DNA from: Blepharisma stoltei ATCC 30299
Taxonomy: Eukaryota; Protista; Ciliophora
Length of the DNA stretch: 64,000 nucleotides
Direction of reading: 5' to 3'
Assembly: GCA_965603825.1 (NCBI GenBank)
Contig: CBFDEM010000018.1
Coordinates: 930,001 to 994,000, forward strand
Below the pieces are notes generated by a model. That model did no database searches, was not told where the DNA came from, and saw only the letters and a program-made list of their open reading frames with translations. Made by a program: the position numbers and the translations under genes. Positions 11,874-54,201 of the stretch are shown one piece after another (positions within the stretch are counted from its first letter, which is position 1; every line of letters begins with the position of its first letter).

Positions 11874-11955
11874 TATAGGAATTGAAAAATTAACAAATTT
11901 CACATTTTTAAGAAAATATCAGTAAATTAATTTTTATCATGTTATACTCTGTAAG

Positions 11956-13506: not shown

Positions 13507-13563
13507 TTCAAATTGAATTATGAATTATTTCGTTTGAATGGCATCTATAAATAATAACTGAAA

Positions 13564-14139
13564 ATGTTTAAGAACACGTTCCAGTCTGGATTCCTCTCGA
13601 TCTTGTACAGCATAGGAAGCAAGCCTCTGCAGATTTGGGACAAAAGTGTGCGAAATGGACACATAAAACGAATAACTGACCAAGACATCCAAAGCTCTGT
13701 GCTCGAAATCATGGGAACCAACGTAAGCACCACCTTTATAACTTGTCCAGCAGACCCCAACAGCACCTTGGGAATCAAGCTGCCCTTTCTTGTGATGATT
13801 ATCAAGAATTTGAAGAAATACTTCACCTTCGAGGTGCAGGTCCTCGATGACAAAAACATCAGGAGACGGTTTCGGGCTTCCAATTACCAAAGTACCACAA
13901 GGGTAAAACCTTTTATTTGTACAATGCCTATGAGGCTGGACGAGGGTTGAAACCAAATCCAGTTCAATTTGTCGGATTTTACAAGGCGAGCCTACGGAAC
14001 CAATTATATTGAAACACTCAGGGTGCAGATTCATGCAAACTGCAGGATGAGGAGAATTTATTTCTCAGATAGACTGTACTCCGAAGAAGAGTTGCCGCCT
14101 GAGTTTAAGCTCTTTTTGCCGCTTCAGAAACAGAGTTAA
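13564..14139 (+). CDS. CFAP20: Cilia- and flagella-associated protein 20 (BUG22)
   Basis: [27 protein letters not shown]...; TGA13948 lies in the invariant LDEGWNQIQFNL; continues to [15 protein letters not shown]. Confidence 0.97.
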
Positions 14140-16003: not shown

Positions 16004-16307
16004 TTATGCCAAATCTCAATACTTTTTCAAACTAAAAAAAGCCAATTTTACTTAAGCAGTAATGCAAGATAAGATTAATAATATTTATAAAAATCAATAA
16101 ATGAGCGATACTAAATGCATGGCAAATATAAATCAATGAAAAGTAGCCTAGCGATTAATGTGATTTAGAAAAGATTCTTATTTTTTGAATGAAATTAATT
16201 CAAATTGAAGAAGTTGGGAACTGCTGATTCGGGGATCGTTATTTTGCAATTTAATTACAAGAATGCTAAAACTATAAATAATTACGTAATGGTAATTCAC
16301 TATAAAA

Positions 16308-18125: not shown

Positions 18126-18339
18126 TTATTCTATTTCTTATAATTGAGAAGATTCCTGTCCTATTTATAAATACATAAAGTAAGTAATAAATAAATCAGA
18201 CAAGCATTGATGTAAATATGCAATCACAGAGTTTCATAAAATAAGCCAGCCCTTGCCATGATAAAGAAACCAGTTAGTGAGGTAAAAAGTGTCTTCGTTA
18301 AAATTAATTAAATAATATAAGATTATAGTTTGAAATTTG

Positions 18340-19335
18340 TTAATTTGAGTATATATACAGATAAATACGTGCTGTAATCTTCTTTGATAAGTTAAAAACC
18401 GTGAATTCGTTTTGCTCAGGTATTATAAAGCTGTCCCATTGGCTCATGTTATATGATTGCCCATTCAAGCGAAGTTGAAAGCCATGCCGCTCTGAGCGTA
18501 GCACCATTCCTCTGATTGAAGCAGAAGACTTTGGAAACGTGAGGCCTTTATGTTTGGGAAAAGAAACTTGTTTTACCTCATAATTAGGATTTGAAAAGAT
18601 TGAAAAAGTTTTTATTGAATCTTCTATAATGAAACTTGCATTTTTGCTTCTTCAAAAAAGGTTATAATGAGCAACAATGCTGCTTCCTGTGATTGCATCT
18701 GCAATAACTAAGCTGCCTTCAACTTCTTCTAAAATAGTCGAATTTGGCTTTTTCCTTTTATTTCCTTTAGTTATAAACTTTTTCTCAACGTTTTTTGCTT
18801 TTTCAATTCCCACAAATTTACCTTTTGAATCATAAATCATTTTTTCATTGAGCCAATGCCTCAGCCTTGGGACTCTGTTTCTGACTGGATACCTGCCATT
18901 AGCAAAAGTTTGTTTTTCCAAGTTTGTCTCTTCTTTATCTGAATCACTTGTTGAAAGCTCACTTTCGATTATTTCATATCTCTTCCTTTTCCTGCTTTTA
19001 ATTTTAATTGCTTTTGGCTTTTGTGATGAAATAGAGAAATCAAGCACTTTTTGTTTATATGCTTGAATAACACTAGAACAGTCAGATCTATCTGAAGGAA
19101 ATTTGATTTTGGTTTGAAAAAGGCTGCATTGTGAGTCAGACTGACTTTCATCCATTTGACTGAATAAGTCATTCATCTCGTTTCTCAATTTTTGGAAGTA
19201 CATGCTGAGACGAGGGCCTCTGAAAGATGATGAGCGCCTTTTGCTAGATATTGACCATTTCGATGAATGTGAGTGGCTACGATGCCGTTTAGCTGATGAG
19301 CATCGGCTTCTTCTGAAGAAATAGAGATCTTCCAT
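18340..19335 (-). CDS. CENPC: CENP-C/Mif2-like inner kinetochore protein, 331 aa
   Basis: CENP-C motif-like RYPVRNRVPRLRHWLNEKMIY; reading through TGA18652 adds a cupin-like C-terminus (...MSQWDSFIIPEQNEFTVFNLS...) ending at TAA 18340-18342. Confidence 0.75.
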
Positions 19336-19738
19336 TTTAAATTTTCAATTCTAAGCGCTATAACGTAATCGTAATATTAAATATGAGAAGCTAAATTTAA
19401 CAACAATTTAACTTTGTGAGCACCATTATCTTTCTAGGTATTAATTTTCCATTTCAAAATATTCATTTTCTTAATTTTCTTCATTAAATAAATAAAGAAA
19501 TTATTTATAAAGGCTTTGCTATAGTAGATTGACTAAATTATTTAGTCGAACGTTTAAATGAAAACTATTTGTGTGTGGAGGTCTTAAAGATTCACTTTAA
19601 AAGGTTTATTTCAAATAAATGTGCACATACTTTAACCCAGTCATCATACTATTATTTTCCTCAACATACACAAATCTACTATTTTTCACTTTCAACATGA
19701 TTTATTATTAAGAAAATTTCATAAATATTCTGGTTAAC

Positions 19739-20620
19739 TTAAAGCACGTCACGTGACCAGTATTGTCTATTTCCACCTCTATTAAAGGTAGGACGATAAA
19801 TATTGTCGTCTGGGAATGGATATTTCAGTCTATAGTTTGGATCTTTAAGTCCCTGCCTAATTGGGAACAAGTAATCCATGATATCATTATCTTCCTCTAC
19901 TTCTGCTTTTTTCTCAGGATCAGAAGAATTGATTAGCTCATCAAGAACCTGGTTTCCAGGGTCGACTCCAAAGCTGATGTGGTTGAAGAGCTGTTCCTTT
20001 GTGAAGTACATCCCATAGAAATAAGGCATAACTCTTGGGAACTCATTCCAATACTTTCTCAATGTAATATTTGGGAGCATAGCCAAAAAGAAAGTGTCTA
20101 ACCCTGTATAAGTCCAGTCATCATCAGCCATTCTGAAAATCTTGTTGTCGTAGTCTTGGTATTTTTTGACAAGACCAAGGTTAGGACCTGGCCCTTGCTT
20201 TTCAGGGACTTGCATACCCCAGGTTCTCCAGTTTCTTGCTCTCGTGTTTCTTGCCTCCATGAGGATTTGATAGTAAGGATCTCTATTTTTGGCGTAAACT
20301 GGGAACCTAATTTTCAACCTATCGTCCGTATGCATATCTGATATGCAGCCACCTCTTCTCTTCAGTTGGCCAACTGTGAAGTCTACGTATTGGGACATGA
20401 ATCTACGCCAAAGGCTGGACGTCCAGATCCATCTCCAGATTTTGGTGCCATTTGTGGGGTTCCATCTGAGATGAAGGTCTCTGTCCTCAATTTGAGGCAT
20501 GATATTGTATGGAAGGCAAAATTCACGCTTGATAAAGAACCATTTCCCATTCAATTTGTGAGGAGAGAAGAACTTGAGCTGATACCAAAAGATAGGGTTA
20601 AGCCATGCAAATATGGACAT
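19739..20620 (-). CDS. Hypothetical aromatic/Trp-rich protein, 293 aa, possibly a mitochondrial complex subunit
   Basis: Clean ATG-TAA ORF, higher GC than neighbours, 13 Trp all TGG; function is a guess. Confidence 0.75.
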   Translation of the reverse strand: MSIFAWLNPIFWYQLKFFSPHKLNGKWFFIKREFCLPYNIMPQIEDRDLHLRWNPTNGTKIWRWIWTSSLWRRFMSQYVDFTVGQLKRRGGCISDMHTDDRLKIRFPVYAKNRDPYYQILMEARNTRARNWRTWGMQVPEKQGPGPNLGLVKKYQDYDNKIFRMADDDWTYTGLDTFFLAMLPNITLRKYWNEFPRVMPYFYGMYFTKEQLFNHISFGVDPGNQVLDELINSSDPEKKAEVEEDNDIMDYLFPIRQGLKDPNYRLKYPFPDDNIYRPTFNRGGNRQYWSRDVL

Positions 20621-20689
20621 TATTTATTATTACAATTCAATTTAGATTGGTTTAAAAATATTTCGCAAATTGCATTGGAGGAACATTAA

Positions 20690-22552
20690 TTATTTCGTCT
20701 CGGAAAAAAAAGATCTTGAGTCTCTATACAGTTTGGGGTTGGATTCTGTCACATTGAATCCTTTAGTTTTCAAGGTTTCTTGGAGTTCGAGGCTTGGAAA
20801 AGCAGAACAGTTCTCGTTGTAGCTTGGAGATATTTTTTCACTATAGCTCACAAGTGATTTAAAAGAAGCAGACATGGGGCTTAGGATTTTGCCAGAGGAG
20901 CCAAAGCTGAGCTGAAGAATTTCGCTGTGCCGATTTCGCTTGGATTTTTCTAGTAACGAACTAACGACTACACTTTCAGCTTCACCTGGAAGAAAATCAT
21001 CAAGAGACTCTTTGTCTGAGCGAGTTTTGATAGTCTCAGCTTGTTCGATTGCTTTTCTATGGATAGATAGTTTTTCTAAGCATGATAGTCTTTCTTCAAG
21101 CTCATTGGTTTCGGCTTTCTTGGTTGATAATGGAGATGTGTCACCATTTGTTAATAAGTTTTTAGAAATTGCTGAAGGAGTAGAAGGTTTGGTGTAAGCT
21201 CTTTTCGGAAACTTGGAATAAGATGTAGACATTCTTGTATTCAGTCTTGAAGCAGACTCTGATCTTCTAATAGGAGTGTATGGGCCATTTTCTTGAAAGT
21301 TGGTTGAATTGTTAAGTTTTTGGACATTGTCACACAGCTCTTGCTTCAAATCAACTATAGATCTTTGATGGTTCTCTAAATTGATAATCCTTTCTTCGAG
21401 TTCTAGATAAGCTGCAATATTAGTTGTTTCTTCTTTTGTCGTTTGCTGCTTGGACAAATCTGAACACTTATGCTCTAATTTTGTAACTTTGTTTCTGACT
21501 GCAGTGCTTAATTTTTGATGGTTGCCTCTGACTATTAGAATTTCGTTGCTCATTTGGTCGAGTTTTGCTTTTAAGTCTTCTTGAGCTTTTAAAAAAGTTT
21601 CACTTGTGGAGTTGATTTCTTTGGATATTTTGATGTTTGCATCCTTAAAATTATAGAGTTTGGATTGAATAGTTGAAATATTGCTTTGTAGCTCTTTAAT
21701 CATAGCTTTTAGATTTTCCTGCATTTCTTTTAGGGAATCAACTGATAAAAAGGTTGGTTTCAAATTTTCTTCTAATAAAGTTAGCTTACTTTCTAGGTCT
21801 TGTGTCTTTTTGCTGCTTAATATCATTTCAGCTTTGATTGCTTCAATTGATTTGTCTGAGCTTTCCCTTTGTTCATTAATAATTGGTATCTGATCTTTAA
21901 TTTCTATCAGAGGTTTTAGGCTTTCATTTATTCATTCTTTTACCTTATGCTCAAAATTCTCTTGAAAATCCTTTGCTGAATTGCTTTGATCGGCCAGCTT
22001 ATTTTCGATGATTGAAATTTTTGTGCTCACTTCTTTATAGTTATCAACAGATTCATTTGAAACTTTGCTTAATGCAATAGAGAAACTCTCAAATAATTTA
22101 TAAATTTGATGGTGCTCCACATTAGATCGTCTATCAGTGCTTCTTGAAGTTCTCGGATCTTCATTCCTTGATCTGTTAGTATCCATTAGTCTAGGAGTTT
22201 CGTTAAGGCTGCTTTCTGAATAGACAAGGTTTCTTAATGAATCTTCAATGGAATAATTTGAGACTATATCTTCACTGAGCTCGGCATCTATTTTTTGGGA
22301 TAAGTCTCTTGCACTTGGACCATAAGCTTGCTCTATTAGTTCTTCTTCGTTGGTTTTATCTTGAGTGTCAGATTTGGATTGATTATAAAACGTCAATTCG
22401 AATTTGTCATTTATTTGAGGATTCTCTTCTATTCTGATTGGCCCGTTTTGATGTTGTGAATCTGCGTCAACAGCTCTTGGAGGAAAAATATATTGATTAT
22501 AGTTTGGGCTTAAATCTTGAAAAGCGTAGTGAATACTGGGGTTCATGTACAT
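20690..22552 (-). CDS. Hypothetical coiled-coil protein, 620 aa
   Basis: ORFs 21932-22552 and 20690-21826 join in frame through TGA21932. Confidence 0.8.
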
Positions 22553-22954
22553 GGGTTTTATATATTAAGAGGAAAATAAATTTAATCATTATTTTATATT
22601 TTATCATAAAGGAGTCGCTCAATTTAGGCTACTATGCTACGATATAAGTATATAAAAGGCATGAATATTATATATCAGATTAAGCATAATTATAATTCTT
22701 TGTATTTAAGAAATTAAAAACTGCACATGAATAATCCTCTATTAATCTTGAATCAGATTATAGTTATAAAAATATGCAATCTTAACTCCCTTTTGCCATT
22801 ATAAGCAGATTCAAGATCAGCAACTTCTATATAGAAACAATCAGCTTTTTCTCATTCTCAAAAATTTTTTCTTTATTTATCCTGAATTCTCTATCTCTCT
22901 GCATCTCTGCACATTTGATATCCTTAAGTAATGGCTTTGGATAATAATTATAAA

Positions 22955-24460
22955 ATGGTTATGAGAGCACGTGCCTGGCCTCTCGTTCGCTCCTTAGTGC
23001 GATTCAACTCCAACCTCACTACAACTCGCAATCCTTCAGCTTACGTTCTCGACCCAACTTCAGATGTTTCTCAATTTTCAAAGAGCAAGCTAGTTTACCA
23101 CGGAGAGCTCGAGGACGGAGTAATTCCTGAAGCACTCAAGTACTCGTATCCTTGCAACCAAACTACTCTTTCTAACGGACTTTTAGTTGCTACAGAAGCA
23201 AGCCACAACGCCTTAGCCCACTTATGCGTCGTTGTTAAAGCTGGTGTGAGAAATGAAAACTTCCAAGTCAATGGTATTGGTCACTTTGTAAGGAAACTTA
23301 GATTTAAAGGGACTGAACAAAGAAGCAAACTTCAGCTCGCAGGAGACGTCGAAAATATTGGAGGGGAGCTTAGAATTAAGGCTGGAAAAGAAGTCACTGA
23401 GTTCCACATTGAAGTCCCAAAGGCTTATACTGCAAAGGCAATGGAAATTCTTGCAGATGTAGTTCTCAGCTCTAAGTTCAACAAAAATGCTATTGAAGAG
23501 CAAAAGGCAGAAAGCTCTGAAGCACTTTTTGACACAGCAGATAATAAAAGGCTGATTTTAGAAAACATCCACTACACTGCATATAGAGATCACATGATTG
23601 GACAGCCAATTAGAGGAAACCAAAAAAGCATCCAAAATATTACTCAGGACGCTATTAAAGATTATATTGATGCACACTATATTGCTCCAAGAATGGTATT
23701 GACAGCTACAGGAAATGTAGACCACAAACAAATTGCTGAGCTAGGAGAAAAATACTTCGGAAAAGTTGCTAAGTCTGGAAGAGAAATCACAGGAGATGAT
23801 AGGCCAATTTTCACTCCTTCCACAGTCACAATCAGAGACGATGATGTCGATTTAGCTCATATGGGCATTTTCTTCCAAGCTCCATCATGGAACCATGAAG
23901 ACTTTTATGCTTTCCAAATGCTCGTAAGACTTTGTGGAGACTATGTTCCTGAAAGAGACTCAATCATAAATCATGCATGGCTACAATATAACTATTTCCA
24001 TACCTGGTTTGGAGAAATTGAAGATTTCGGAGGACACTCAAATCACTACTTCCCTTATAGCAATGCTGCAATATGGGGGCATTATACTCAAAGCTTAGAT
24101 TTGTCAGCCTTTATTTCCCCTCAAGCTTGTTTATGTGGAACAAAGCGCTACACTGACTATATTATGGAATCTGAGCTTTACAGAGCAAGAAATCGTTACT
24201 ACAACGACTTACTAAATAACACCAACTTAGGATCATGGTCAAGCGAAATCGGCCATGAATTATTGTACGCCAAGAGAAGAATCCCAAGATCTGAAGTCGC
24301 CAAAAGAATTTCTGTCATGGGCTCCAGACATTTGGAAAAGACCTTCGCTAAGTGGCTCTGGGATTGCGAGTTAGCTGTTGCAATGTATGGTCCAGTCTTC
24401 ATGCAGATCAGATTCCATAGTGTCTACCGAGGATACATGAATGGAGGTAACGTGTGGTAA
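22955..24460 (+). CDS. Mitochondrial processing peptidase beta / cytochrome bc1 core protein 1-like (M16B), zinc motif degenerate
   Basis: TTLSNGLLVATE, AGVRNE, NGIGHFVRKLRFKGT, HYIAPRMVLTATGNVDH, RRIPRSE; Arg-rich presequence; ATG22955 preferred over 22931 (AAAATG context). Confidence 0.88.
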   Translation: MVMRARAWPLVRSLVRFNSNLTTTRNPSAYVLDPTSDVSQFSKSKLVYHGELEDGVIPEALKYSYPCNQTTLSNGLLVATEASHNALAHLCVVVKAGVRNENFQVNGIGHFVRKLRFKGTEQRSKLQLAGDVENIGGELRIKAGKEVTEFHIEVPKAYTAKAMEILADVVLSSKFNKNAIEEQKAESSEALFDTADNKRLILENIHYTAYRDHMIGQPIRGNQKSIQNITQDAIKDYIDAHYIAPRMVLTATGNVDHKQIAELGEKYFGKVAKSGREITGDDRPIFTPSTVTIRDDDVDLAHMGIFFQAPSWNHEDFYAFQMLVRLCGDYVPERDSIINHAWLQYNYFHTWFGEIEDFGGHSNHYFPYSNAAIWGHYTQSLDLSAFISPQACLCGTKRYTDYIMESELYRARNRYYNDLLNNTNLGSWSSEIGHELLYAKRRIPRSEVAKRISVMGSRHLEKTFAKWLWDCELAVAMYGPVFMQIRFHSVYRGYMNGGNVW

Positions 24461-24683
24461 GTAATAGAACTTACTTATTTAATTTTTATTCTCATAAATT
24501 ATATAAGTCAAAATCAAAAAAAATGTCAGGACGTGAATTGTGTTAAATGGACAAAATTGGGTTTTTCACCCTCAAAATGTGAAGTAAATAATATAAATTT
24601 ATTTTCCAAGTTAAAAAATTATTATTAAATTATCTCCATTTCACTGGCATTCTAATTCCATTCTAAATTAATAAACCATAAAT

Positions 24684-25538
24684 ATGAGTTTTCAGCCTGA
24701 ATTAAGGCCTATCCTTCCTTCAATTAACCTTATTCCTGCACAAGAAGGCTGTATATACCCTATAATACCCATTTATTCGCCTCTTGTCCCAATTCCCATC
24801 CAAAATCTCCAACCAGAAGCAAAGCCCAAATATAAAAGGACGTGGAAGCGTAACCAGGTCGAAGCTTTATATGCCTTTGCAAAGCTCTATTGTGCGCAAA
24901 ATGGCAAAAGCCTCGAAAACCTGCAGCTTCCTGACTTTATTGAAATTGCAAAAAGCACTGATAAAACTGCTGAGCAATGCAGGGTGAAGCTCCATGAAAT
25001 CCATGCATCTGGCTCTTTGAGATCTGGGACTTGGTCCGAAGTCGAAGATGGAATGATAAAAGACATGGCTTTGAGCCAAAAACTGAAATGGGGGCAAATC
25101 GCAAGTCAGGTGAATTCGAAGGTTCATAAAAACATGAAAATAAGAACAGGAAAACAGTGTAAAGAAAGATGGAATAACCATCTTAATCCACATGTAAATA
25201 GAGGTGAGTGGACAGCAGTAGAAGATTTAAAGCTTTTAGAGCTTCATAAAGAACATAAAAATCATTGAAGTTTAATTTCTAAAGAAATGACAACAAGAAC
25301 TGAAAGTGCAATAAAGAACAGAATCAAGTCACTTATGAATAAAGAAATGCAAGATGTAAATAATATAAACAACCCGTCGGCAGCGGTTGATAGACTTATC
25401 ATGAAGAAGAAGATTGAAATTTCAAATCTTAAAGATGCACAGGATAACGCAAGTCCAGGAAGTGGCTCGAATTATAGTCGTGCTACAATGAAACAGCCAA
25501 CCTTTTCTGATCTTGCGATGGGATTGTTTCCTAACTAG
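24684..25538 (+). CDS. Multi-repeat Myb transcription factor (degenerate R1 plus R2R3)
   Basis: GTWSEVED...RTGKQCKERWNNHLNP...GEWTAVEDLKLLELHKEHKNH-W(TGA25266)-SLISKEMTTRTESAIKNR. Confidence 0.9.
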
Positions 25539-25565
25539 CTAAATAGTGTAAATAAAGCATTATAT

Positions 25566-26048
25566 TTAGTGTTTAAACAGAGCCCTTTTCTTCCAGTCGC
25601 TTTTCAAAAGACGTATGGGCCTATTGCAAATATATTTTCCATTCATTTCTTTCATAGCTTTTATGTAATCATCAACTGACCCAAAACTTATAAACCCATA
25701 TCCTTTACTTTCCCCTGATCTCTTGTCTAGGACAATTTTTACTTTCAGGACAGAAGGATATTTCCTGAATGCATTTTTTAGCTTCTCTTCTGTGACTTCG
25801 CTACCTAGATCCCCTACAAAAGCTCGATAGTCATTTTCTGGCCAGTCTTCCATAGTGGGATCAGTCCATTCTTCATCTCCAGATTTTCTAAAAACTCTTC
25901 TCTGGGTTTTCTTTTCTTCTTTTGTCTGTTTTGGTCTTATATTAGGCTGCTCTGGGGGCAAAGTAGCAGGAATAGGCATTCCGTTTGGAAGCTTAGATAG
26001 ACCTTCTCCTGTGCTAAGTTTTAACTTCTTAACTGGCTCTCCTTCCAT
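25566..26048 (-). CDS. RBM42: RNA-binding protein 42-like (RRM)
   Basis: WTDPTMEDWPENDYRAFVGDLGSEVT, SKGYGFISF, AMKEMNGKYICNRPIRLLKSDWK. Confidence 0.9.
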   Translation of the reverse strand: MEGEPVKKLKLSTGEGLSKLPNGMPIPATLPPEQPNIRPKQTKEEKKTQRRVFRKSGDEEWTDPTMEDWPENDYRAFVGDLGSEVTEEKLKNAFRKYPSVLKVKIVLDKRSGESKGYGFISFGSVDDYIKAMKEMNGKYICNRPIRLLKSDWKKRALFKH

Positions 26049-26296
26049 AATAAAAATAATATAGCAGTGATTCGAGAATTATCTCTCTGAAAAACAATCT
26101 TATAATGATTTCTCTTAATAATAGGAACTATTTGTAATAAACCAAAAAAACAGATTATATATTGTAGCTCTTTAAATTCGTCAATAGTATTTCCCTAGTA
26201 TCTATAAGTAATCGCACTAAATTTTCCTTTAATATTAAAGTATTATTAATGTCTCTGATAAAATACACTTTTAAAGTTTGAATTTTTTCTAAAATA

Positions 26297-28144
26297 ATGA
26301 TTAATTTAACTGGATTTTCAATCCCTGAATCTTTCGTCCGAGGAGAAAAGCCTATCCAATTCCGCACAATCAGGGCGATGAACAAAGACAAGCTCGAAGA
26401 AATCCGTCGAAAAGAAGTACGGCTCCGTCAGCAGCTAAGAGAAAGGTTTATTTCTGATAAATACAGTCCTACCCGGATATCAATACTTGAAAAACCCACT
26501 AAGCGATTCCATCAAAATGAGCTTTTTATCTCAAGCGAAAAAAAGAAAATTGTGAGGAGAGCACTCGATCTTAAAGCCAAAACAATCAAGTTTTCACGTC
26601 CCTCAACTTCCCCTAATAATGAAGGATTGCTATTGCAAACATGTGCACTTGTTCAGAGCAAAAATACTCACTCTGATGATAAACTGAGCATAAATCTGCC
26701 TTTATTTTTCTCAACCCCTCAGCTTCCGAAGATAAATAACACATTAGAAAACTGAAAAATCTGCAATGGGATACCGAAAGATTCAAAAATATTCATAATA
26801 AACGGGAATTACCCAGTTCTAAGAGAAGCTTTCTTGCAGAGAGGATGAGCAGAGAATACGGACCCTGAAAGCATGCATTTTGATATAAAGTGAGCCAGAA
26901 ACCCAAGAGTCCCAGCTGATATTCGTGACTGGCAAATGATCAATCATTTCCCACGGAACATTGAGCTGGCAGCTAAATGGAATTTTTGTGAAAACATAAA
27001 AAAGCTCCCCAAGAACACCAAATTCAACCCACTGAAATTCTTCCCTCGGTGCTTTAAAATTGGATCAAAAGAAAACGAAGAGTTCTATGAGCACTATAAA
27101 GCGTTAAAAGCATTAGGCATTCTTAAAAGCTACGTCGAGGGTAAAGAAGATTACTGCTATGAAAAAATATTAGTCTCTAGTAGAGTGTGCCAACGATGAG
27201 CATTTGACATAGAAAAGAACCCAACTGGTGAAAGAGCCAAACCTTTATCATTAGTCTTAACTATTGAGTGGAGAATTTTAAATTCAAACAACCAAAACGA
27301 AATGGCAAGCGAGCTTTCTAAGCTTCATTTACAAAGTATACCTTCTGCTCAAGACTTGCCTTCCTATGCAGCAAGCTCCCTTTCTGCTATAAAGAATGCT
27401 GATCCACAATTTTATATCAATGGCAAAAGAGATATCTGGATTGTAAAGCCAGGAAGAAAATCAAGAGGCAGAGGAATCGCTTTATTTGATAATATTGACC
27501 AAATAAGGCAATACACAAGCGGGTCAAAGTATTGGGTCATTCAAAAGTACATAGAAAACCCTTTGATAATTCAGAAGAAAAAATTCGACATAAGACAGTG
27601 GGTGCTTATCAGCAATTCAGACCCTTTAACTGTTTGGATTTACCAAGATTGCTACCTCAGATTTGCAGTTGATGACTATCAGCTTGACAGATTGGAAAAT
27701 AAATATATGCACTTAACAAATAACAGCATTGTAAAAAATTCTGATAATTTTGAAGATGCAGAAATCGTAGGCTGTATGTGACACATAAATCAGCTTAAAG
27801 AGTACTTTGAAGAGAATTGGCAGAGAAATGTATGGCAGGACGAAATTTTTCCAAAAATCAGGAAAATCGTAAAAATGTCACTTATGTCAGTAGGGAATTT
27901 AGGAAGAAGGCAATCGTCGTTTGAAATATTTGGGTATGATTTGATGATTGATGAAAATCTACAGCCTTGGTTGATAGAAATTAACTCAAGCCCAGCTATG
28001 GATTACAGCACACCAGTGACTGAAGTCCTTGTCAAAGAAGTCTTAAGAGATGCAGTCAAAGTTGTAATTGACCATGCAGCTGACGATAGCTGTGACACTG
28101 GCAAATTTGTCTTATGCTATAAAGCAAGATCCCGTATTAAGTAG
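26297..28144 (+). CDS. Tubulin-tyrosine-ligase-like protein, TTLL3/8-type (tubulin glycylase), 615 aa
   Basis: One frame through five TGA (26753, 26846, 26891, 27197, 27779); GNYPVLREAFLQRGW, INHFPRN, WIVKPGRKSRGRGI, KFDIRQWVL, HLTNNSI, FEIFGYD, WLIEINSSP. Confidence 0.88.
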
Positions 28145-28206
28145 AATAGATATCCCATATGTAAAAGAATTATATTTACAATAAATAAATATTATGCAAG
28201 CAATGA

Positions 28207-30651
28207 TTATTGCAAAATGCTTCCTCCAAGCCTTCTTCGCTGAGTTGCATTTTCAAGCTTCTGAGTTTCAATTCCAAGCTCTTTCCAAACATGCTTTAAC
28301 AGTTTAGCAGACTCTTTCCAGCACTTTTTGAGGTCTTTATTAGACTTGTGCAGCGTGACGATTTCTTTTTCTTTTTCTTCAAGTTTGCCATTGAGCTTGG
28401 CAATTTCATCTAAATAGCCCTGGATTTCTTTGGCAGTGTTTGCTTTGGTGATTTCGTTTATTGTATTGCTTTTTAGACATTTTAATTTAGCAGCAAGCTG
28501 TTCTCGCTCATTTTGAAGCTCATTCAAAGCTTCTTCTGTCTGTGTGATCATCTGAGTGATCTTTCTATCGTTTTCATATTTAACTCTGTCTAGCACTTCA
28601 TGGTGCTCTTCTTCTAGGATTTTGATAGTCTCAGCTTTATCTTTCAAAATTTCTTCGATTCTCTGATCTTTATCGTTTAGTCTCAAGGCAAGGCCAGCTT
28701 TTTCTGATTTTTCAGTTATAAGCTCTCTTTCTAGCTCAATGAATTTGATATGATAGTCTTCGTTGACTTCTTGTTTCTGTTTTTTTAATGATTCTATTAC
28801 TTCCATAGAGACTTTTTCTTTCTCAGTCAGCTCTTTGACCTTATCACTCAGCAATTTCTCATTGAGGGTCTTTTCTCTTATTTTTATTTCTTTTTCATTC
28901 GCAGTGTTTTGGAGAACTATTGTTTCTTCTCTACATTCAATAAACCGTCTGTACATTAAGTCTTTTTCCTCATGAAGCTTTTTGATTTCTTGTAGAAATC
29001 CTTCTTTAGATGATTTTAATTTATCGTATTCATATTGAAGCTGCTCCATCTTGACTTTGTCTGTTTGACTATTTGCAAGTGACTCTTGCAAGGCATTTAC
29101 TTGCATTTTCAGAGCGTTTATTTGCTCCATAAGATTACTAATGATTTTCGTTCTTTCAAATTTGTAAGATTCGAAATCTTCTTGAAGCATCTTTAGCCCT
29201 TCATTTTGGAGTTTGGACTTTGTTTTGTATTTTTCACATTTTTCTTCTATCATCGATTTCTCTTTGGCCATGGTATCCATGTGCTCAAGAGCTAGCGAGT
29301 TTGAAGGCCTTTTAGTTGTTGATCGATTGAAATCTTCTTTTTTATGCTCATTTTTTGCTAGCTCATTTATTTCTTCTCCTAGTACAGTTAGCCCAGTTAA
29401 TCCTCTATGATATGAAAATGAGTCATCACTCATATTTGACCCACACTCAAGCCTTCTTTCTATCTCCAGCTCCTGCATCTTGGTCTCTGCAAAATTTAGC
29501 TTATCTTCCAGATCATGGCATTGCTTTGTCAACTGCTTAATTTGCTTTTCCTTATTTTCTAACGCAAAAGCCAAAGACTCAGATTTTTCTTTTTCATGCA
29601 CCAGCTGGTCTTTTATAAAATTTGCCGTTTTTGCAGCTTTATTTAGGTCAATAATTTCTTCTTCTAACGAGCTTACCTTTTTTTGCAAATACTCACTTTG
29701 CTTCGTTACTTCAGATAGCTTTTTTGTTGCATTTACCATATTTTCGCATTTCTTTTTATATGTATGTAATTGCTTTTCTGCTTGTTGCAATCTAAAAACA
29801 TTTGAATTTGCGACGTCTAATTCATCTCTTAAGCTTGCAATTTCACTTTCATATCTTCTTTTAGCTTCACTTAGCTCTTCTTGTATTACTGATAGTTTGC
29901 CTTCTTTTTCACTGATTTTGGATTCTAGCTCTATAAAAGTAATATTAGGGGATAATAATGATGGTGATTTTCGCACCAATTCGCTTTCTAAATTGCAGTT
30001 CATTGCTTTCAGCTCATCTCTTTCACTGGCGATTTCATGCTTTTGTGTCGCCAGCTGTGATAGCTCTTCTTGCATTGCTTGGATTTTGTATGTAAGTCGC
30101 TTCTTTTCGTGTCGTAAAATGTGCACTTCTTTCCGCTCGGGGTCTGGAGGTGGTGGCTGATTTGTTGGAAGTTCATTTCCTAAGACTTTTTGAATAAAGA
30201 ACATAAGTTGCGTTTGGCATTTTTCATCCAATTGCATTATAGGATGAATGAAATTTTCTTTTTGAGGTGAATTTAATATTGCGAAAACAACGAGCTCCAT
30301 TAAGCTGACTATATCATCAGTTGACTCTTTTCTTGCTATATTTGCAAGGTCAATTTCTCCAAAACGATCATGAGGAGCTTGTACAACCTGGTCTAGATAA
30401 GAGTCAATTGTTTTTTTGAGCCTTCGGAGGTTAGCTAGCTTTAAAGCTCAGTTATCACGTGCATCAAGCGTTATGCACTCTATGTCAAAATGATCTGGCG
30501 ACCTTTATAAGTTTTACAGTTTAGCCATCAACTCATAGAGCAAAATGCCATCAGATAGTTCTGATATTTTTTCACAAGGATGGCTCAAATTCATTTTGTT
30601 AAGCTACATAAACCTTACCCATTGAATCAGACTGTAGGAAATATCGTCCAT
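28207..30651 (-). CDS. HOOK-family protein (N-terminal HOOK domain plus long coiled coil); 2 introns
   Basis: Spliced N-terminus SLIQW|LNKM...ELSDGILLYELMAKL|SPDHF...DN-W(TGA30448)-ALKLANLRRL matches the HOOK domain and runs in frame into ORF 28207-30300. Confidence 0.85.
30503..30517 (-). other. 15-nt intron (GTAAAACTTATAAAG)
   Basis: Removes an in-frame TAA in the HOOK domain; A at position 10. Confidence 0.85.
30604..30618 (-). other. 15-nt intron (GTAAGGTTTATGTAG)
   Basis: Removes an in-frame TAG after SLIQW; A at position 10. Confidence 0.85.
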
Positions 30652-30931
30652 TTAATTCTAAACTTTCTGTATTATATGCATTCAGTTGCTATCTTAGAAA
30701 TAAAATGTAAATAAAAAAAATTATTATTGAGGGAATGAAATGATGATTTTTGGGCGATCTTAAGAAAAATAAGCTTTCTTTTAGCTTTTTTCTTGATTTT
30801 GACAAAATAATTTAATTTTAGAGGGCGATATTTAATAACAAAATTAACTAACTAAAAATATTAACTGCAAATCTCTAAATGAATAAAAAAAACTTTAAAT
30901 AATTATAAGCAGCTAATTACTTTTGAAGATA

Positions 30932-32041
30932 TTAATGAATATGTGATTTATTTTGTCTGATTATTTTCGCAGTCAAAGCATAAGGCTCAGATTCATCAAT
31001 TTCAACTGAATTCTCAATGTCTTCCCACATTTTTCTGACTATGTCAAAATATGGATGGCCCATAGCTTCTTTAGGGAGCAGTCTATCTATATGGTCATAC
31101 ACAAACAATTTTGATAAAAGATCAATTGCTTGTGGATTCGCTAAATGGCTATTTTCATTTGTAACAAATAAATTAAGACTCTGCTTGCTTTGATATACGA
31201 TTTTTTTCTCAAGAGCCCTATCAATGTCTACCCTATGCTTTGCTATATACTCTCCTAAAGCTTCTGACCCTAAAACTGCAATAATCTTCATGAGCTGGTC
31301 TTCATTGTCTTCTCCTTGGAAAAATGGTTCTTTTTTGAAAACTATTCCAGCCATCATGCACGCCAGGCTTCAAGAATCAAGTGAATAATTATAATACCTA
31401 TGGCCTACTAAGAGCTCTGGGCCTTTAAAATATCTAGACGCGACCCTAACATGATATGGATGTCCATGAATGTAATATTCTGCCAAACCCCAGTCAATAA
31501 TCCTTATTTTTCTTTTGGGGTGGTCAAACATAATATTGTGTGGTTTGATATCTCTATGGATTACGCCTTTTGAATGGCAATAATCCAAGGTTTTAAGAAT
31601 TTCATACATATAGTATCTCACATCAAAGTCCCCTCATTGATTATAAAGCTCTCTGAAATCTTCACCTATAGAATACTCAATAATAAGTGCTGGAGTATTT
31701 GTAATTCGGTCCCTTACAATGTCGATAAATCTTGGGATTGATGGATGGCCTGTAAGCGTTTTTAATATGCTGATTTCTCTTGCTATTTTGTTTATGCCGA
31801 CTTGTCTTAAGAATTTTATAGTGACTCGATCATATGTCAATAGATTAACACCTTCATATACTTCAGCATATTTTCCTTGGCCGAGCTTGTTTACAATCTC
31901 ATAATCGTCAAGCCTGCCAATCTCAAAGGCCCGAAATTCATAATTATAAAAATCTCCTGGCACTCCTTTATTGACATTAGCGTAAAGTCTTGGTTGCATT
32001 CCATAGTTAAACCTCTTTAAAAGGTTTTTGATTCCAATCAT
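30932..32041 (-). CDS. Casein kinase II alpha-like kinase (divergent), 369 aa
   Basis: [47 protein letters not shown](TGA31370)-SLAC; second TGA at 31634. Confidence 0.9.
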
Positions 32042-32430
32042 AAATTTTTTAATTATTTTATAAAATTAATTAAAGTTGATTACAGCTAGAACGAATTCAA
32101 TATTGAATAATTAGAAGCTCTTAAAAGCTGTGGGATAGATGATAATACTATAAATTCTTAGAAAAAATTATTAGCTCTATATCATCAATTTGCAATTTAT
32201 TTATTGCGTAAAATAGCTTTCAAATTTTCGATTTGATTATTATAACAACACCTATAAATAATTTTAAAGTTTTCAAGAAGATTAAAAGCCTATTCAAATA
32301 TTCTTATATTCCAAACAAAGCAAATATCCCTAAAATAATTTTCCTCTATTGAATTTTTGCCTTTCACTTCTCTGCAAACACTCTTGATACTCCCAGATTA
32401 AATATAAATCACGAGTATAATAATACTTAA

Positions 32431-32967
32431 ATGTCAAGCATTTACAATTGGAATGTACCAATCACGGTGCCTCCAGTCCATGATACAACGCCGTGTATGG
32501 ATTACATGATTGCTTATGAAGAGTGCTTAGTAGATGCAGTTCCCCGCAATATGGAAGTCTTTCACCCTAATTGGCCTACCATGTGGCCTCGCCTTCTTAC
32601 AGATGGAAAACTAAGACCTGATCTTTTAGACGACGAAACAGCAGAAATTGGCCCTGTAATGGACAGAGCCTTTACCTGGATGAAGCCTCTCTCTGAAAGT
32701 GTAAAAGAAAAACTTTGGGAATGCGAAGAAGAAAGATTCCTCTATAAAGGCTGCCTTAGAAAGCTATTATCCAAAAAAAATGACCCTAGAACTAGATATC
32801 CATTTTGGCAGCCTGAAGAACACTCCACTAAAGCACTTGGGAGACGTTTATATGTAGATCCAAGAAATAGATATCCAAGTGATATGAATCATGATGTCAA
32901 AGAAAGCGACCAAGATTATGTCAGAAGACGATGGGCTAAATTTGTTGAGGAAGGAGGAGACTTATAA
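32431..32967 (+). CDS. Twin-CX9C protein, probable mitochondrial intermembrane-space/respiratory-chain subunit
   Basis: CMDYMIAYEEC and CEEERFLYKGC are both CX9C; 7 Trp, all TGG. Confidence 0.7.
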   Translation: MSSIYNWNVPITVPPVHDTTPCMDYMIAYEECLVDAVPRNMEVFHPNWPTMWPRLLTDGKLRPDLLDDETAEIGPVMDRAFTWMKPLSESVKEKLWECEEERFLYKGCLRKLLSKKNDPRTRYPFWQPEEHSTKALGRRLYVDPRNRYPSDMNHDVKESDQDYVRRRWAKFVEEGGDL

Positions 32968-33021
32968 ACCCAAAACATTCTTAAGACTAAGAATCAGTTT
33001 ATTAAATACAGGCAATTTATA

Positions 33022-35592
33022 TTACCTAAATTTACTTGTTGTATGGGGACGCATATAAGGGATAGAAGATCTCCAATGTATTGAGGAAAAACCTTTGACT
33101 GCAAGTTTAGAGCTGAGAGGATTAAAGTTGCTGAATTTTTCAATACATTTGGAAAAGCTTTCTCCATCAGATTCAGCTTCAGCATAGTATCCTTGTGATT
33201 GATCCTGCGTTTTGATTGTTTGAAGAGTGGAGATGATATCGCTGAGAAGTCCTCTTTCTCTTCCTACAATGCAGGAAACAATGTCTTGAGCGATTGTGTT
33301 GGATGAAGATTTTAGCATTTCTTCAAGCTGGATGATAGAGCACTTGCCGATGGTTTGATTACGAACTTCTTCAAGCATGTCATTTTCTGAATCGGGTTGT
33401 GAAGAAGCGCTGTAAACTTTTTTTCTTTTCATTTCTTTCATTTCAGATAGACGAACTTCTAATTTTTGCAGTAAGGTTCCAGCTTTGTGTGCTTCAGGGT
33501 TTTCCCAAGCGTGGTGGCAAATGAATTTATCAATTGATTTTTTCCACTCTTTTCTGAGTCTTTCTTCTGGAATTGTCTTAATAAGATCGATGACCCTTGA
33601 AACATAACAGATCAATACATCATCTCCGGTGACCACAATTTTATCAGTTTGAGGTTGCTTGTGAGTGCAAGGAATTTCTGAAGAACCTTGAGACTTGCAC
33701 TGTATGCAAGAAAAACTGTCAACTTTGATTTTTTTGTTTGAAGATTGCTCATTAGCATCTTGATTTCGATTATCATTTGCGGGGGGATTGCTTTGATCTA
33801 CACAGGTGTTTATTTTTATATCCCTTTTTAGCAGCGATGTAGTTTGAGGACGTGTAAAATTTTTGACTGAAGATGATGAGTGGAGATCTGCAGAATCATT
33901 AAAAAGAGCATTGTAAAGAGCTTTGTTAATGGGCCGTATTGTTGAAAAATATTGGTCGTAATAGTCACAGTCCTTGGCAGGATAAATTCGTAAAAACCCT
34001 CCTCTTCTATCATATTCTTCTATGGCTTCTTTTATTACATCTTTGAGCTTTGATCTGCTGTTCGTATCCTTCCTTTTCATAGATGGAGATTGAGCTCTCG
34101 CAGGCTGACTGCTGACTCCCCTAAATTTATTAGAATATTGGCTTTGCCTAAACCTTATTCTTGCTCTAATCTTACTAGGATTTTCTTTTTTTCTGTCATA
34201 AACCCTTACCCCAATTAAATTAAAAGCATCTGCAATCAAATTTCCTTTGATATGCAAATCCAAAGGTGCATCAGTCGCCAAAGAAGGGCTGAGGTTTACT
34301 TCTAGCAGCCACGGCTTTAAGTTAGAATCCAGTAAAACATCAAACCCAAACAAATCAAAACAGTTATTTCTATGCAGTCCAAGCTTTCTAGCATTATCAA
34401 TAAGAATTTCTTCTACCGAAAGAATCGCTTTGACAACTAGTTCATAAATCCTATTCCACATCAGATCAGTATCTATCCCAACGCTTTCCAAATGCTTCAT
34501 TAGCGCATGTAAGCTTCATTTATGCCCCACATCATCTTGTCTTCAGTCATTGTTCTGCACAAATTTATCATTGTTTTTGTTTACACTATAGTTCGTCAGA
34601 TGGATAAAATGATTGTTTTTGTTCCCAGGAGTATAAGGTTCACTTGCGAACCTTGCCAAGCCTTCTTCATATATATAAATTTTCAATGGGTCGATACTTG
34701 TTATGAGAACATAAAGTCTGATATCAAATTTTAGACCATTGATAAGCAATGGGTTTTGAATGTATTGGGAAACTATACAAGGCTCATCAGTTGGAACATC
34801 TTCAACGTTTTCAATCAAATAAATTCCTCGCCCTCTTGAACTTGCAGATGGCTTCAATATCCATTGAGCAGTTTTATCTCGATAAAATTGATTATAAAAG
34901 TCAGAATACTCATCAGGCAGGATAAAGGTATCAGGTATAAAATCAAATGCTTGCTTACCAAATTTTTTCTGCATGGCTACAATGTTAGCACACATCCTGT
35001 CTTTTCTAGTCAATTCAAAAGAATTTGGGAAATGATTGATTCTCTGATACTCATTTAAACCTTCATATAGGTAAGGCTTAGCACTTGATCCTATTCACAT
35101 AATATTCCAATCGTGCGAATCTGTATAATTAAACCCTGATGCTTCAAAAATTGATCGGACAAGTTTTGCATCTGTTTTATAAATCCTATATAAGAGTTCG
35201 TGTGGCTGCAAAAAATTCCCCTTACAGTAGGAATTTTGAGGCAGAGAATTCTTTACTAATTGCTGCTCACTTACTGGCATAAACAGTATTAAAGAAGGTC
35301 GATAGTCTTCTTCTTTTTTTAGTTTGTCAAGCTTTTGTCGGCAGGCAGCTTCAAATAATTTCAAAAATTTTGTAGATGTCCCTCGTTGTGTGTGTAGGCC
35401 TTGCCCTGGCCTCCCAACTGTTTCTATAGAGATGCCTTTTCATGAATTTTTTTCGTGTTCTTGATTGGCTTTAAGCAGCCTCAATGCTGAGTTGTCTGAA
35501 GTTCCTCCTTTTGGAGCTACTGTGACTATTGTGAATTCTGTGTTTGAAGATTTTGGAGTTCTGTGCGAAATTGACTTAGCTCTAAATGACAT
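33022..35592 (-). CDS. Tubulin polyglutamylase, TTLL4/5-like, 856 aa
   Basis: One frame from ATG35592 through TGA 35440, 35095, 34543, 34516; QRINHFPNSFELTRKD, WILKPSASSRGRGI, KFDIRLYVL, EEGLARFA, HLTNYSVNK, GHKWSL, LLEVNLSPSL. Confidence 0.9.
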
Positions 35593-36075: not shown

Positions 36076-37182
36076 ATGAGTATACCAAAATTTACAACTG
36101 ATTCGCATATTATCTTCAGCACAATTTGCAAACAGCTTGAGTGTCCAATATGCACGATCTCTAAATCTACTTCGAATTTTACTACGATTAAAGCCTGTGG
36201 ACATTCGTTTTGCAGCTTTTGCATTCAGTCTTATTTACTTAATCAGATTGACATGGGCAAATTCTATCCTTTAAAATGCCCAAACTTTGAATGCACGTCA
36301 GAAGATATTGATATTGAAGAATTTCAAGGATTGCTTACTGATGAACAATTTCAGCAATTCGCAAGACTAAAACAAAGAGCTTTGCTTGAAAAAGATCCAA
36401 ACTTCAGGTGGTGCCCCAAGCCTGACTGCAAAGGATATTGCTACATTGAGAACTCAAATATGAACTTAAAATGCAACTTGTGCAGCTTTGAATTCTGCGC
36501 AAGCTGCAAAGAAGCTTGGCATACTGGAATCTGTATATCTGTTGAAGATGGGCTTAGACAATACGCAAAAGACAAAAATCTTAAAAAATGCCCTTCTTGT
36601 CATTCTTATGTCGAAAAGGTATGGGGATGTTCCACTATTGTTTGCAGGTGTGGAGTAAGCTTTTGCATGAGCTGTGGAAATCTTCTGGACGATAAGCACG
36701 ACCCAATTGTTTGTACACTCGGAGGAAACTATTCTAACGCTTCATGGGGTATGATTCTTTTATTTCTTGCCGCCTGAGTGATTTTTCCAATTGATTCCTT
36801 TATTTTGATTGTTCATATTGGAGAAAATTGGGGAGGGCCTGAAATTGAAGATAAATGTGATCGATATATCTGGGAGCATCGAAAAGTATTTTATGTCATA
36901 GCGTTTTTATTGTCTCCAATCTTTACTGTGCTGCTTCTGATTCTGTTTGCCGGAATATTTTCAAATGAAATCTTAAATGAATATTTGAAAAGTCATTACA
37001 TCGAAGAGAGACTTAACTGAAAAGTTTGGCTTGCAATCAAAATTGTTTACTATATCCTTAGCACTATCATTATACTAGTATTGATTGTTCTAGTCTGGCT
37101 AATATTTCATGCTCTTTTGCCTTTGTTTGGTTTAGGGCTATTAATAGCAAAATTGGTTTATATCTGCAAAAAAGCTAAATAA
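36076..37182 (+). CDS. RBR (RING1-IBR-RING2) E3 ubiquitin ligase with C-terminal transmembrane region
   Basis: CPIC..CGHSFCSFC..CPNFEC; RWCPKPDC..CNLC..FCASCKEAWH; KKCPSCHSYVEKVWGCSTIVCRCG; reads through TGA36775 and TGA37018 into hydrophobic helices; TAA 37180. Confidence 0.88.
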
Positions 37183-37216: not shown

Positions 37217-38686
37217 TTAATTATTTTTAAAATTTTCTAATTCTCTTCTATACATCCCCAATATTTCTTCATACTTTATTAAAAGATTTTTCATGTAAGC
37301 GAACTTTTCTTCGTACTTCTCTTGATCTTCTTGTGCATTCTGTTGAAATTGTAACAGCTTAGTTTTAAGCATATAATTTTCTTCAAGTTTTAACTGTGAT
37401 TGTTTAATTAAATCATCAAAATATTTGAATTTATCAACTTCTGAAGCTATTACTAATTCACAAAGACTAATCATTCCAGCAAATATTAGACCTATCATTT
37501 TTGATTCTTTTGGGATTTTTTTCGCTGCATCATTTAGTACCATTGTTAAATAGTCGAGATATTTTCTATGATTTTCCTCACATATACCTTTGACGTCTAG
37601 TATCTGAAGGTCTTGATTAAGCATACCTATTTGTTCTTGAATTATTACATAAATTTCATTATCAGCAGACATGAAATTCTTGAAGTTTTCAGGTCTTTCT
37701 TTGCCTTTGAAATTTGGAGTCATTGGAAGATTCGATGATTTTGAGCTATTTCTGCTTAATTTAGAGATACTTGATTCTTCAGCTTCTAAATATGAGTCGA
37801 CTTCATTATCGATGGAAAAATTAGTATTTTTATTAAAAATTTGACTTCCATGATGCATGTGACTTGGCTGAAGCTGCTGGGAGCCTCCTAAAGAGTCTAC
37901 TCGCTTTTTTCATGGTATTGTTAAATGAATTAAATTTGTGGCAGGGGTTTCTAGTGATACCTGCGCTGATTTGTTTATAGATTCAACTTTTATTATCTTT
38001 GAGTTGAGTTTTTTAGCATACGTTGATACACTTTCGTTCAAAGTTGAGATTTCAAGGAAAAGTGATAAGGAGTTAAGCTTTTGGCTTAAACTTATATTAT
38101 CAGAATTTTCACAATAGCTGCAAATACGTTTTTTTGATTGAGAGGGAAAGAGGCTGTAGTTTTTACAGCTCAAACACATTTTAGGCACCCCTGAAGTCAA
38201 GTCAAGGTCATAATATTTTTTTCTTGGTAATTTAGTGTCTCCATAAGATTTTCCTTTGCAATTGCAGCCACATAAAAGGCAGCATTGAGAAGTTTCATTT
38301 TTTTGTACTGCTTCAAAAAGTTCAGCTATTTTTGATTTTAGCGAAGATAAGTTATTTAGCGAAGAAATCAGTTTTTTATAAAGAAACCTTTCTTTTTCAT
38401 CAGCATTTTCACATGGCGAATCTTCTCTATCCTTCTCATATAAATCCAGTAAATTTTTCGCAATTTCTCCAATTGGCATTTCTTTGCTTAATTTTGACCC
38501 TTGTTGCATTTTTTCAGACTCCGAAAATCTTCAAATTTCAGATTTCAGATCTTTTGTGGATTTATTTGGAGTCAACGATCTAGAAGCTCTCTGTTTAGAT
38601 TGTGACGGAGACCTAGAATGGTTTGGTGGATTCTTATTATATCCAATTTTTTGTAGGGAGCTTCGTCCTTGGCTTATGTCTTGCAT
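37217..38686 (-). CDS. Hypothetical protein with Cys cluster and coiled coil, 489 aa
   Basis: ATG38686, in frame through TGA38531 and TGA37910; CCLLCGCNC...CLSC...RICSYC. Confidence 0.72.
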
Positions 38687-39577: not shown

Positions 39578-40564
39578 CTATGATACTTTTGCGAGATCGA
39601 CGAGTTTGACCCTTTGGATTCCTTGGATTAACTTTGTTGGCCAGATTTTATGGTGCCTCATTTCGACTTCCAGCTTATTTTTGAGACTGGTTTGGGGTAA
39701 AAACGTTTTCCTAACTTGTGAGTAGTATTCTTTCATCTTGTGAAGCTTTTCGCTGTCTTTTTTTTGCACTCTATATTATAATTACTTTGTGAGGGCTATA
39801 TCTCTAAATGAGTGGTGATAAGGAATATGCTCTTTTCTTAGTTCGTCACTAGATGAATTCAAATTGTTTTTTACTAAATAAGAGTCGGAAAGGTCCCTTA
39901 ATTCTTTTATTGTTGACTCACTTCTTTTGTGAATCTTTTCAACATCATTTCAAGTTCTTTTTTGAGGAGAAATGCTATTTACTGATCTTCCTCCCGGTGA
40001 TTTCTCATTCTTTTTCTTATCTCACGATTTATTTCCTATCATATGAATCAGTACCGTGTCTTTATCCGATCTTTTCAATATAAAAGGAGGTGGTATTTTT
40101 TCAATGATATTCGGTTTTATTTCTTTCATTATTTCAGCTTCATTTGCCTCACTTTCTTGATTTACCAGGCCACCTGGTAACTTTTTAATCGTTTTCTTCT
40201 TTTTTAGCAATGAAATTTTTTCTGTTTCAGTTGATTTATGGTTTAAATAATAAGGGACACTATCATATTGTATCGAAGCGTCAGAGACTTGCTTTTTTGG
40301 AGGAGAGTATATTGATAAATTATTATTTGAAGAAGCCAAACTGCTTTCTTTCATCTGCACTTTTTCTCGTTTAGCGAGTTCTGCGATATAGCTTTCTTCT
40401 AACTCAATAAAGTTCATAAGAGATCCATCAACTGTTTTTTCTTGAGACTCGTCTCAAGAAATTTTGTCACTTTTCCAGAGAGCCCGGGCTTTTCGGATTT
40501 CTTCTGCTTGCTTGAATTTTATCATTTTAGATTTCACGATCTTTTGTGGGTTTGGTCAGAGCAT
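39578..40564 (-). CDS. Hypothetical basic protein; 1 intron
   Basis: Continuous frame through TGA 40556, 40454, 40022, 39950 plus a 15-nt intron, joining track ORFs 40022-40417 and 39578-39769; start could be ATG40525. Confidence 0.7.
39771..39785 (-). other. 15-nt intron (GTAATTATAATATAG)
   Basis: Removes an in-frame TAA and joins ALTK|VQKKD; A at position 10. Confidence 0.8.
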
Positions 40565-40710
40565 TGTGATAATTAGAGTTTATAATGAATTATTTTAATG
40601 CAATTTTTGGAATTTGATCATTTAATATAAAGACAAATATTAGCAATAATATATAACAGATTAAATTACCCTTGAAGCATTATTTCTTTATTGTGGTTAA
40701 CATCATGAAG

Positions 40711-54040: not shown

Positions 54041-54201
54041 TTAATTATTCTGAAAAAAATGAATCATTTCTGATAAATAAAACTTCATAAATTTATAAGT
54101 GGGATCAAAGTAGGTGCCTAATAATCCTGCATAAGAAAAATAGAGATATTATAAGAGATTTCCATATTTTTATTTAATAATTTTGAGATAAAATCATATT
54201 A

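Follow-up and report, generated by a model that had tools for sequence, protein, structure and literature searches.

Gene ends and genetic code of the window

The stretch of DNA analysed here, referred to as the window, comprises 64,000 nucleotides (positions 930001-994000 of contig 18) of the macronuclear DNA of Blepharisma stoltei, taken from an assembly of 41.46 Mb in 64 contigs with about 34% G+C. In this ciliate UGA is translated as Trp, and only UAA and UAG serve as stops. With TAA and TAG as the sole stop codons the window resolves into 40 long, coding-looking and non-overlapping open reading frames (ORFs), and both the use of UGA for Trp and the presence of tiny introns of 15-16 nt agree with the published macronuclear genome of strain ATCC 30299 (bioRxiv 10.1101/2021.12.14.471607). 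Ten proteins translated from contig 1 of this assembly are identical to proteins listed by NCBI and UniProt under B. stoltei. Among coding sequences (CDSs) rebuilt from public gene tables, 82 that contain TGA have an open frame whose length is exactly that of the annotated product, and the inner "stops" that are frequent in kinase-domain matches throughout the genome are TGA only. Every annotated gene end examined carries TAA or TAG, a regularity that is partly built in by construction, since the annotation was made with code 4.

One intron of 15 nt (GTA...TAG, 55174-55188, plus strand) has its terminal TAG in frame and creates a false ORF end inside a gene for a DYRK-like kinase; another of 15 nt (16536-16550), which like the first has the form GTAA...TTTAG, also ends with an in-frame TAG and splits an XPNPEP1-like gene. 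Because the intron TAG is in frame, a plain ORF scan cuts both genes at false stops. The end of ORF 54181-55188, which is formed by the TAG of the former intron, was excluded from the counts, leaving 39 true ORF ends.

The TGA that lies nearest to any gene end in the window belongs to a gene for an RBR-type (RING-IBR) E3 ligase (36076-37182, plus strand), a single exon of 368 codons that encodes a protein with a hydrophobic C-terminal tail. Direct reading of the sequence gives a frame unbroken from the ATG at 36076 to the TAA at 37180-37182, and the public annotation at the matching place lists a 368-aa product with PF01485 (IBR) and zf-C3HC4 domains, which bears out the RBR identity proposed when the window was first read from its letters alone (hereafter, the sequence-only reading). 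This in-frame TGA, read as Trp, occupies 37018-37020 on the plus strand, 54 codons (162 nt) before the stop, precisely as that reading had it; the other in-frame Trp TGA of the gene, at 36775-36777 on the same strand, lies 135 codons before the stop. Second closest in the window is a TGA on the minus strand (39950-39952), 56 codons before the TAA (39782-39784) of ORF 39782-40579, while the DYRK-like kinase gene has a TGA at 55846-55848 (plus strand), 64 codons (192 nt) before its TAA at 56038-56040. The list of nearest TGAs in the sequence-only reading was thus right about the RBR and DYRK genes; its remaining entry, a TGA 189 nt before the stop of a CFAP20 gene, was not located by us in the window, and the 56-codon case had been missed.

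Genes that converge in the window do so at very short distances. The TAA of the RBR gene (37180-37182, plus strand) is separated by 34 nt from the TAA of its convergent neighbour (37217-38686, minus strand), and the stop-to-stop gaps of convergent pairs are 27, 34, 38, 54 and 62 nt, the three closest pairs being 25538/25566, 37182/37217 and 56040/56079 (27, 34 and 38 nt, respectively). Since convergent stops stand only 27-62 nt apart, the 3' UTRs must be very short, or else overlap on opposite strands. The median 3' UTR reported for heterotrichs is 21-26 nt (bioRxiv 10.1101/2022.04.12.488043).

Trp codons before the stop in the window and in a second sample

In the 39 terminal ORFs of the window we counted 44-47 TGA and 142-145 TGG codons for Trp, i.e. 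about 24% TGA, close to the manual count of about 53 and 156 (about 25%) made originally. Over all 39 gene ends the last 53 codons contain no TGA and 27 TGG (last 50 codons: no TGA, 25 TGG), so that the claim of the sequence-only reading, namely zero TGA against about 30 TGG in the final 53 or so codons, holds on recount. A run test that is free of any cut-off, with labels pooled over genes, gives P = 3.5e-4 for the event that the 27 Trp codons nearest to stops are all TGG. This pooled value flatters the result, because TGA use varies strongly among genes; when the TGA and TGG labels are shuffled within genes, which takes out between-gene differences in codon bias, P is 0.006 when the last 50 codons are considered and 0.09 when only the last 30 are. 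The density of TGG is not lower near stops, hence it is the choice of codon that shifts, and not the supply of Trp that runs short.

A second sample was assembled from 87 annotated gene ends outside the window, which had played no part in the forming of the idea. Its DNA came from 200 kb of contig 1 and from the public gene tables around 12 proteins; one contig region supplies most of it, as a word search found only one Kelch-protein paralog by which to move to other contigs. The public record that carries the gene tables, GCA_914767885.1, is identical (locus L022) to positions 14273-33304 of the window save that its 22 kb contain nine additional blocks, each about 80-660 nt long and several situated within genes. 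These blocks are germline internally eliminated sequences (IESs), and the record is a MAC+IES assembly, whose loci hold germline insertions relative to the window and whose genes are therefore not directly translatable. Gene ends were mapped back onto macronuclear DNA, or single deletions were solved, which yielded the 82 rebuilt CDSs; genes with an ambiguous tail were counted only to the limit of the open frame. One germline insertion, within the gene at L026:12723-17727, contains an ORF (L026:13629-14708, plus strand) for a 359-aa transposase of the DDE_1/Tc5 type. This germline-limited ORF has TGA codons 8, 33 and 46 codons before its stop; avoidance of late TGA is not seen in this single gene.

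The base that follows TGA suggests that the gene sample is representative: it is A in 52% of 143 cases (35% after TGG), and A follows 52.1% of the 44,087 TGA codons reported for the B. stoltei genome (bioRxiv 10.1101/2023.10.09.561518, supplement).

Part of the 200 kb of contig 1 is taken up by some 17 paralogs arranged in tandem, each encoding a protein of about 1150 aa with ANF_receptor domains (PF01094), in loci L002-L012 (G000:C1:100001-205000; e.g. C1 sample positions 1597-5079, 10510-14085 and 25914-29384). These paralogs are unusually rich in TGA, which makes up 57% of their Trp codons (6-19 per gene), and have no Trp codon of either kind in the last 55 or so codons; for the latter reason they are uninformative on depletion. 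One member of the family is broken (L032:10001-15201; C1 sample positions 30322-33603, minus strand): its ORFs, in shifting frames, match residues 3-273, 292-498, 496-684, 687-959 and 956-1097 of a full-length paralog. The annotation splits this broken gene into small separate genes, the "stops" of which are not gene ends.

Crude ORF ends from the 200-kb contig 1 sample show no depletion of TGA; many of these ends are false, and we discarded them as a test because introns with in-frame TAG, pieces of broken genes and the family of about 17 tandem paralogs all yield false ends. The same observations bear on the explanation that the whole effect is an artefact of gene models, wrong ends or frames (from tiny introns, broken genes and code 4 predictions) having distorted the TGA counts near stops. 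In favour of such an artefact speak the 15-nt introns, whose in-frame TAG makes false ORF ends, the broken ANF-receptor gene annotated as several genes, and the crude ORF ends themselves. False ends, however, place TGAs close to presumed stops, and would dilute a depletion rather than create one; moreover, the result in the window is true of every ORF end irrespective of the gene model, and the 82 rebuilt CDSs have the exact annotated length and an open frame. We therefore consider an artefact of gene models very improbable.

In the 87 gene ends of the second sample the last 50 codons contain 11 TGA and 38 TGG (22% TGA) versus 88 TGA and 116 TGG (43%) further up (one-sided Fisher test, P = 0.005). 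Expressed per 1000 codons, TGA occurs 2.55 times near the stop versus 4.82 times further up (P = 0.024), and the within-gene shuffle gives P = 0.035. Under a strict filter, which removes the broken-gene locus and all products under 150 aa and leaves 59 genes, the Fisher test on Trp choice gives P = 0.017 and the TGA rates near the stop and further up have a ratio of 0.65 (P = 0.18). The direction of the effect thus replicates, with a magnitude of about two-fold; the sample taken alone is underpowered, and its support (P of 0.02-0.05 with stricter filtering of genes) is suggestive only. The bins of codons 31-50 are likewise low in TGA (4 TGA, 27 TGG), although with such small numbers the sample does not fix the boundary of the zone.

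The 11 late TGAs of the second sample lie 1, 2, 2, 2, 12, 21, 30, 34, 37, 40 and 48 codons before the stop. Well-supported cases include a 552-aa DHHC/ankyrin protein encoded at L031:5450-7896 (12 codons before the stop), a 716-aa protein (34 codons) and a 981-aa protein with a dynein-light-chain domain (37 codons). The statement that TGA is absent from the last 50 or so codons of every gene is accordingly true of the 39 gene ends of the window, with none in the last 53 codons, but elsewhere gives way to a thinning of about two-fold. The sequence-only reading had also noted that in several genes all TGAs lie in the 5' half. This skew is present in the window (30 of 44 TGAs, P = 0.002) but not in the second sample (41 of 86, P = 0.69), and a general avoidance of TGA in the 3' halves of genes was rejected on that ground. 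The span of 50 codons and the 5'-half skew are peculiarities of the window, and the window with its zero late TGAs is an extreme case of a statistical effect of about two- to three-fold.

Codon specificity of the thinning

The manner in which the window was chosen calls for a rival explanation, according to which chance, aided by selection of the window, accounts for the zero count, and the remainder reflects a compositional drift toward G-ending codons unrelated to termination. The window was among about 700 read from the genome, it was flagged for having no late TGA, and the cut-off was picked after looking. From the observed rates we estimate that a two-fold depletion leaves a window of 39 genes without any TGA in the last 53 codons in about 3% of cases, so that some such windows are expected. 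The failure of the 5'-half skew to replicate and the non-significant rate ratio in the filtered second sample point in the same direction.

The drift itself is observable. In the 126 gene ends of the window and loci L023-L032, the last 50 codons show a mild and general displacement of A-ending codons by their G-ending synonyms. The A-ending share falls near the stop, compared with codons further up, from 0.65 to 0.53 for TTA/TTG, from 0.85 to 0.74 for GCA/GCG, from 0.61 to 0.50 for GTA/GTG, and from 0.63 to 0.52 for CTA/CTG, and this common movement toward G counts in favour of the explanation by chance and drift. GCG and CGT are about two-fold commoner near stops in the same set.

TGA nonetheless goes further than these pairs. 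Its near/far ratio of 0.43 is the lowest among the codons that occur 60 times or more in the 126 genes, and the near-stop odds ratio of TGA/TGG is 0.32 versus 0.81 for 12 other A/G-ending pairs pooled, a significant difference (z = -2.7, P = 0.003); when the comparison is restricted to the second sample, the odds ratio of TGA/TGG is 0.39 (P = 0.026). The thinning is thus specific to TGA beyond the general codon drift, although the gradient from A to G in third positions may be part of the signal. Against chance and drift as the full explanation speak, besides this specificity, the replication of the direction in DNA that was not used for the idea and the published finding of depletion over all predicted genes of the species (bioRxiv 10.1101/2023.10.09.561518). 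Taken together, we regard chance combined with drift as quite unlikely to be the whole story.

Proposed competition between release factor and tRNA at late UGA codons

The depletion has a precedent in the same genome. Swart et al. (2023, bioRxiv 10.1101/2023.10.09.561518, Fig. 2b and Extended Data Fig. 2a) reported that in B. stoltei UGA is depleted genome-wide from 25-30 codons before UAR stops, and read this as the result of competition between eRF1 and tRNA-Trp, in comparison with Condylostoma, karyorelicts and Blastocrithidia. Organism, assembly, phenomenon and interpretation are the same as here; the published effect is a depletion with an onset at 25-30 codons, whereas the sequence-only reading proposed that every gene lacks UGA along its last 50 or so codons. 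The effect in the window is therefore real, partial and already known with the same explanation, and the suggestion that a cryptic feature of the lineage had been met falls, because both the depletion and its reading have been public for this genome since 2023. What the present analysis adds is limited to an independent check on a small scale, the caution that UGA is depleted only in part, a control for codon drift, and a set of genes with late UGAs that can serve as natural test cases.

The reading that we favour, and consider fairly probable, is that each UGA is contested by eRF1 and a tRNA, that nearness to the poly(A) tail shifts the balance to release, and that selection removes late UGAs. 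The chain of events may be pictured as follows. Along roughly the final 25-50 codons of CDSs, UGA-Trp codons are under-represented. UGA, being without a cognate tRNA, would be decoded by a near-cognate tRNA-Trp(CCA) whose anticodon stem is shortened, while the main eRF1 would retain weak recognition of the same codon. With 3' UTRs of a few tens of nt, a late UGA would come to lie near the poly(A) tail and the PABP-eRF3-eRF1 complex, a proximity that would tilt the competition at UGA toward termination; late UGAs would then give rise to truncated proteins and would gradually be replaced by UGG. The role of poly(A) proximity in this scheme follows the model in bioRxiv 10.1101/2022.04.12.488043.

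Our own data show that late TGAs are thinned, that TGA is affected specifically, that gene ends lie close together and how many eRF1-type genes there are; the properties of the tRNA, the assay of eRF1 and the depletion curve for the whole genome come from published papers, and termination at UGA in the cell is the step of the competition model that we infer. The eRF1 N-domain (eRF1_1) is found at four loci in the genome, which fits the three eRF1 paralogs and Pelota of the literature (bioRxiv 10.1101/2023.10.09.561518). No tRNA-Trp gene was found in the window and the sampled DNA; according to the same preprint, the tRNA-Trp(CCA) of B. stoltei has an anticodon stem of 4 bp, and the only tRNA cognate to UGA predicted in the macronuclear genome is that for selenocysteine (supplement). 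The eRF1 of B. japonicum recognises UGA weakly in vitro, as relayed by a citation in that preprint. The proposal of the sequence-only reading that UGA is purged from 3' coding ends through residual termination is thus consistent in direction with the specificity for TGA, the short gaps, the eRF1 genes and the published interpretation, but it applies to a partial depletion and not to an absence, and its termination step in vivo is of the conjectural kind just described.

Several of these facts can also be accommodated by an explanation from the kinetics of translation, in which reading of UGA by a near-cognate tRNA is slow and is costly shortly before the stop, owing to ribosome queues or to interference with termination and recycling, and in which UGA is never read as a stop. 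The prediction of no UGA-cognate tRNA for translation at these codons agrees with such an explanation, and so does the partial character of the depletion, which matches a mild kinetic cost. The A that follows 52% of TGAs is a further point in its favour, as this context is tied to incorporation of Trp at UGA in yeast read-through (bioRxiv 10.1101/2023.10.09.561518). On the other hand, a purely kinetic cost offers no obvious reason for a dependence on distance from the 3' end that extends over 25-50 codons, a similar zone exists in Condylostoma and in karyorelicts, where UGA demonstrably acts as a stop near transcript ends, and the weak recognition of UGA in vitro by a Blepharisma eRF1, as cited there, counts against it as well. 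We regard the kinetic explanation as unlikely, and return to competition between release factor and tRNA as the preferred reading.

The closest relatives of the proposed situation are Condylostoma magnum and Parduczia sp. (Swart et al. 2016 Cell, PMC4967479; Heaphy et al. 2016, PMC5062323) and the karyorelicts (Seah et al. 2022, bioRxiv 10.1101/2022.04.12.488043). They share with Blepharisma the use of UGA for Trp inside genes via a non-cognate tRNA-Trp(CCA), the depletion of in-frame UGA before the true stop and very short 3' UTRs. In these organisms, however, UGA is a working terminator and the depletion zone extends over about 10-20 codons, whereas the annotated genes of Blepharisma end in UAA or UAG and, in our data, show no geometric tail of TGA before these codons. 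In Blastocrithidia (Kachale et al. 2023 Nature, as summarised in bioRxiv 10.1101/2023.10.09.561518) UGA is read as Trp, as in Blepharisma, by a tRNA-Trp(CCA) with a 4-bp stem; that summary also mentions an eRF1 substitution at position 67 and a depletion of both UGA and UAA before stops. According to the same account Blastocrithidia differs in being a trypanosomatid in which the condition arose independently, all three stops have been reassigned, and UAA serves also as a stop.

A thinning of late UGAs in a genome that does not use UGA as a stop is the trace that an "ambiguous intermediate" in the reassignment of stop codons should leave, a state in which release factor and tRNA compete for a codon long after its reassignment. 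Blepharisma would then form a bridge between heterotrichs with the standard code, such as Stentor, and the fully ambiguous codes of Condylostoma and the karyorelicts.

A separate matter is whether UGA still works as a weak terminator at some gene ends in the form of double stops (UGA followed by UAA). If it does, the code of Blepharisma is weakly ambiguous, as in Condylostoma, and not cleanly reassigned; we hold this to be highly doubtful. In the second sample there is no excess or geometric tail of TGA at 3-30 codons before TAA or TAG, and therefore no mark of many genes that truly end at UGA; none of the 87 gene ends has a TGA at codons 3-11 before the stop. One or two codons before TAA, by contrast with an expectation of about 0.8, TGA is present in 4 of the 87 annotated genes, namely L024:7393-7632 and L025:3794-4033 (both minus strand), L031:1291-3243 and L032:14135-14728 (both plus strand). 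As candidates for real UGA stops these are mostly deflated: one is a piece of the broken ANF-receptor gene, and two are predictions of 79 aa that match no family. The sole solid case is the gene at L031:1291-3243, which encodes a 395-aa protein and has its UGA at the second codon before the stop. Loss of the last one or two residues is probably harmless, which would explain why TGA is tolerated at such positions but not why it is in excess there.
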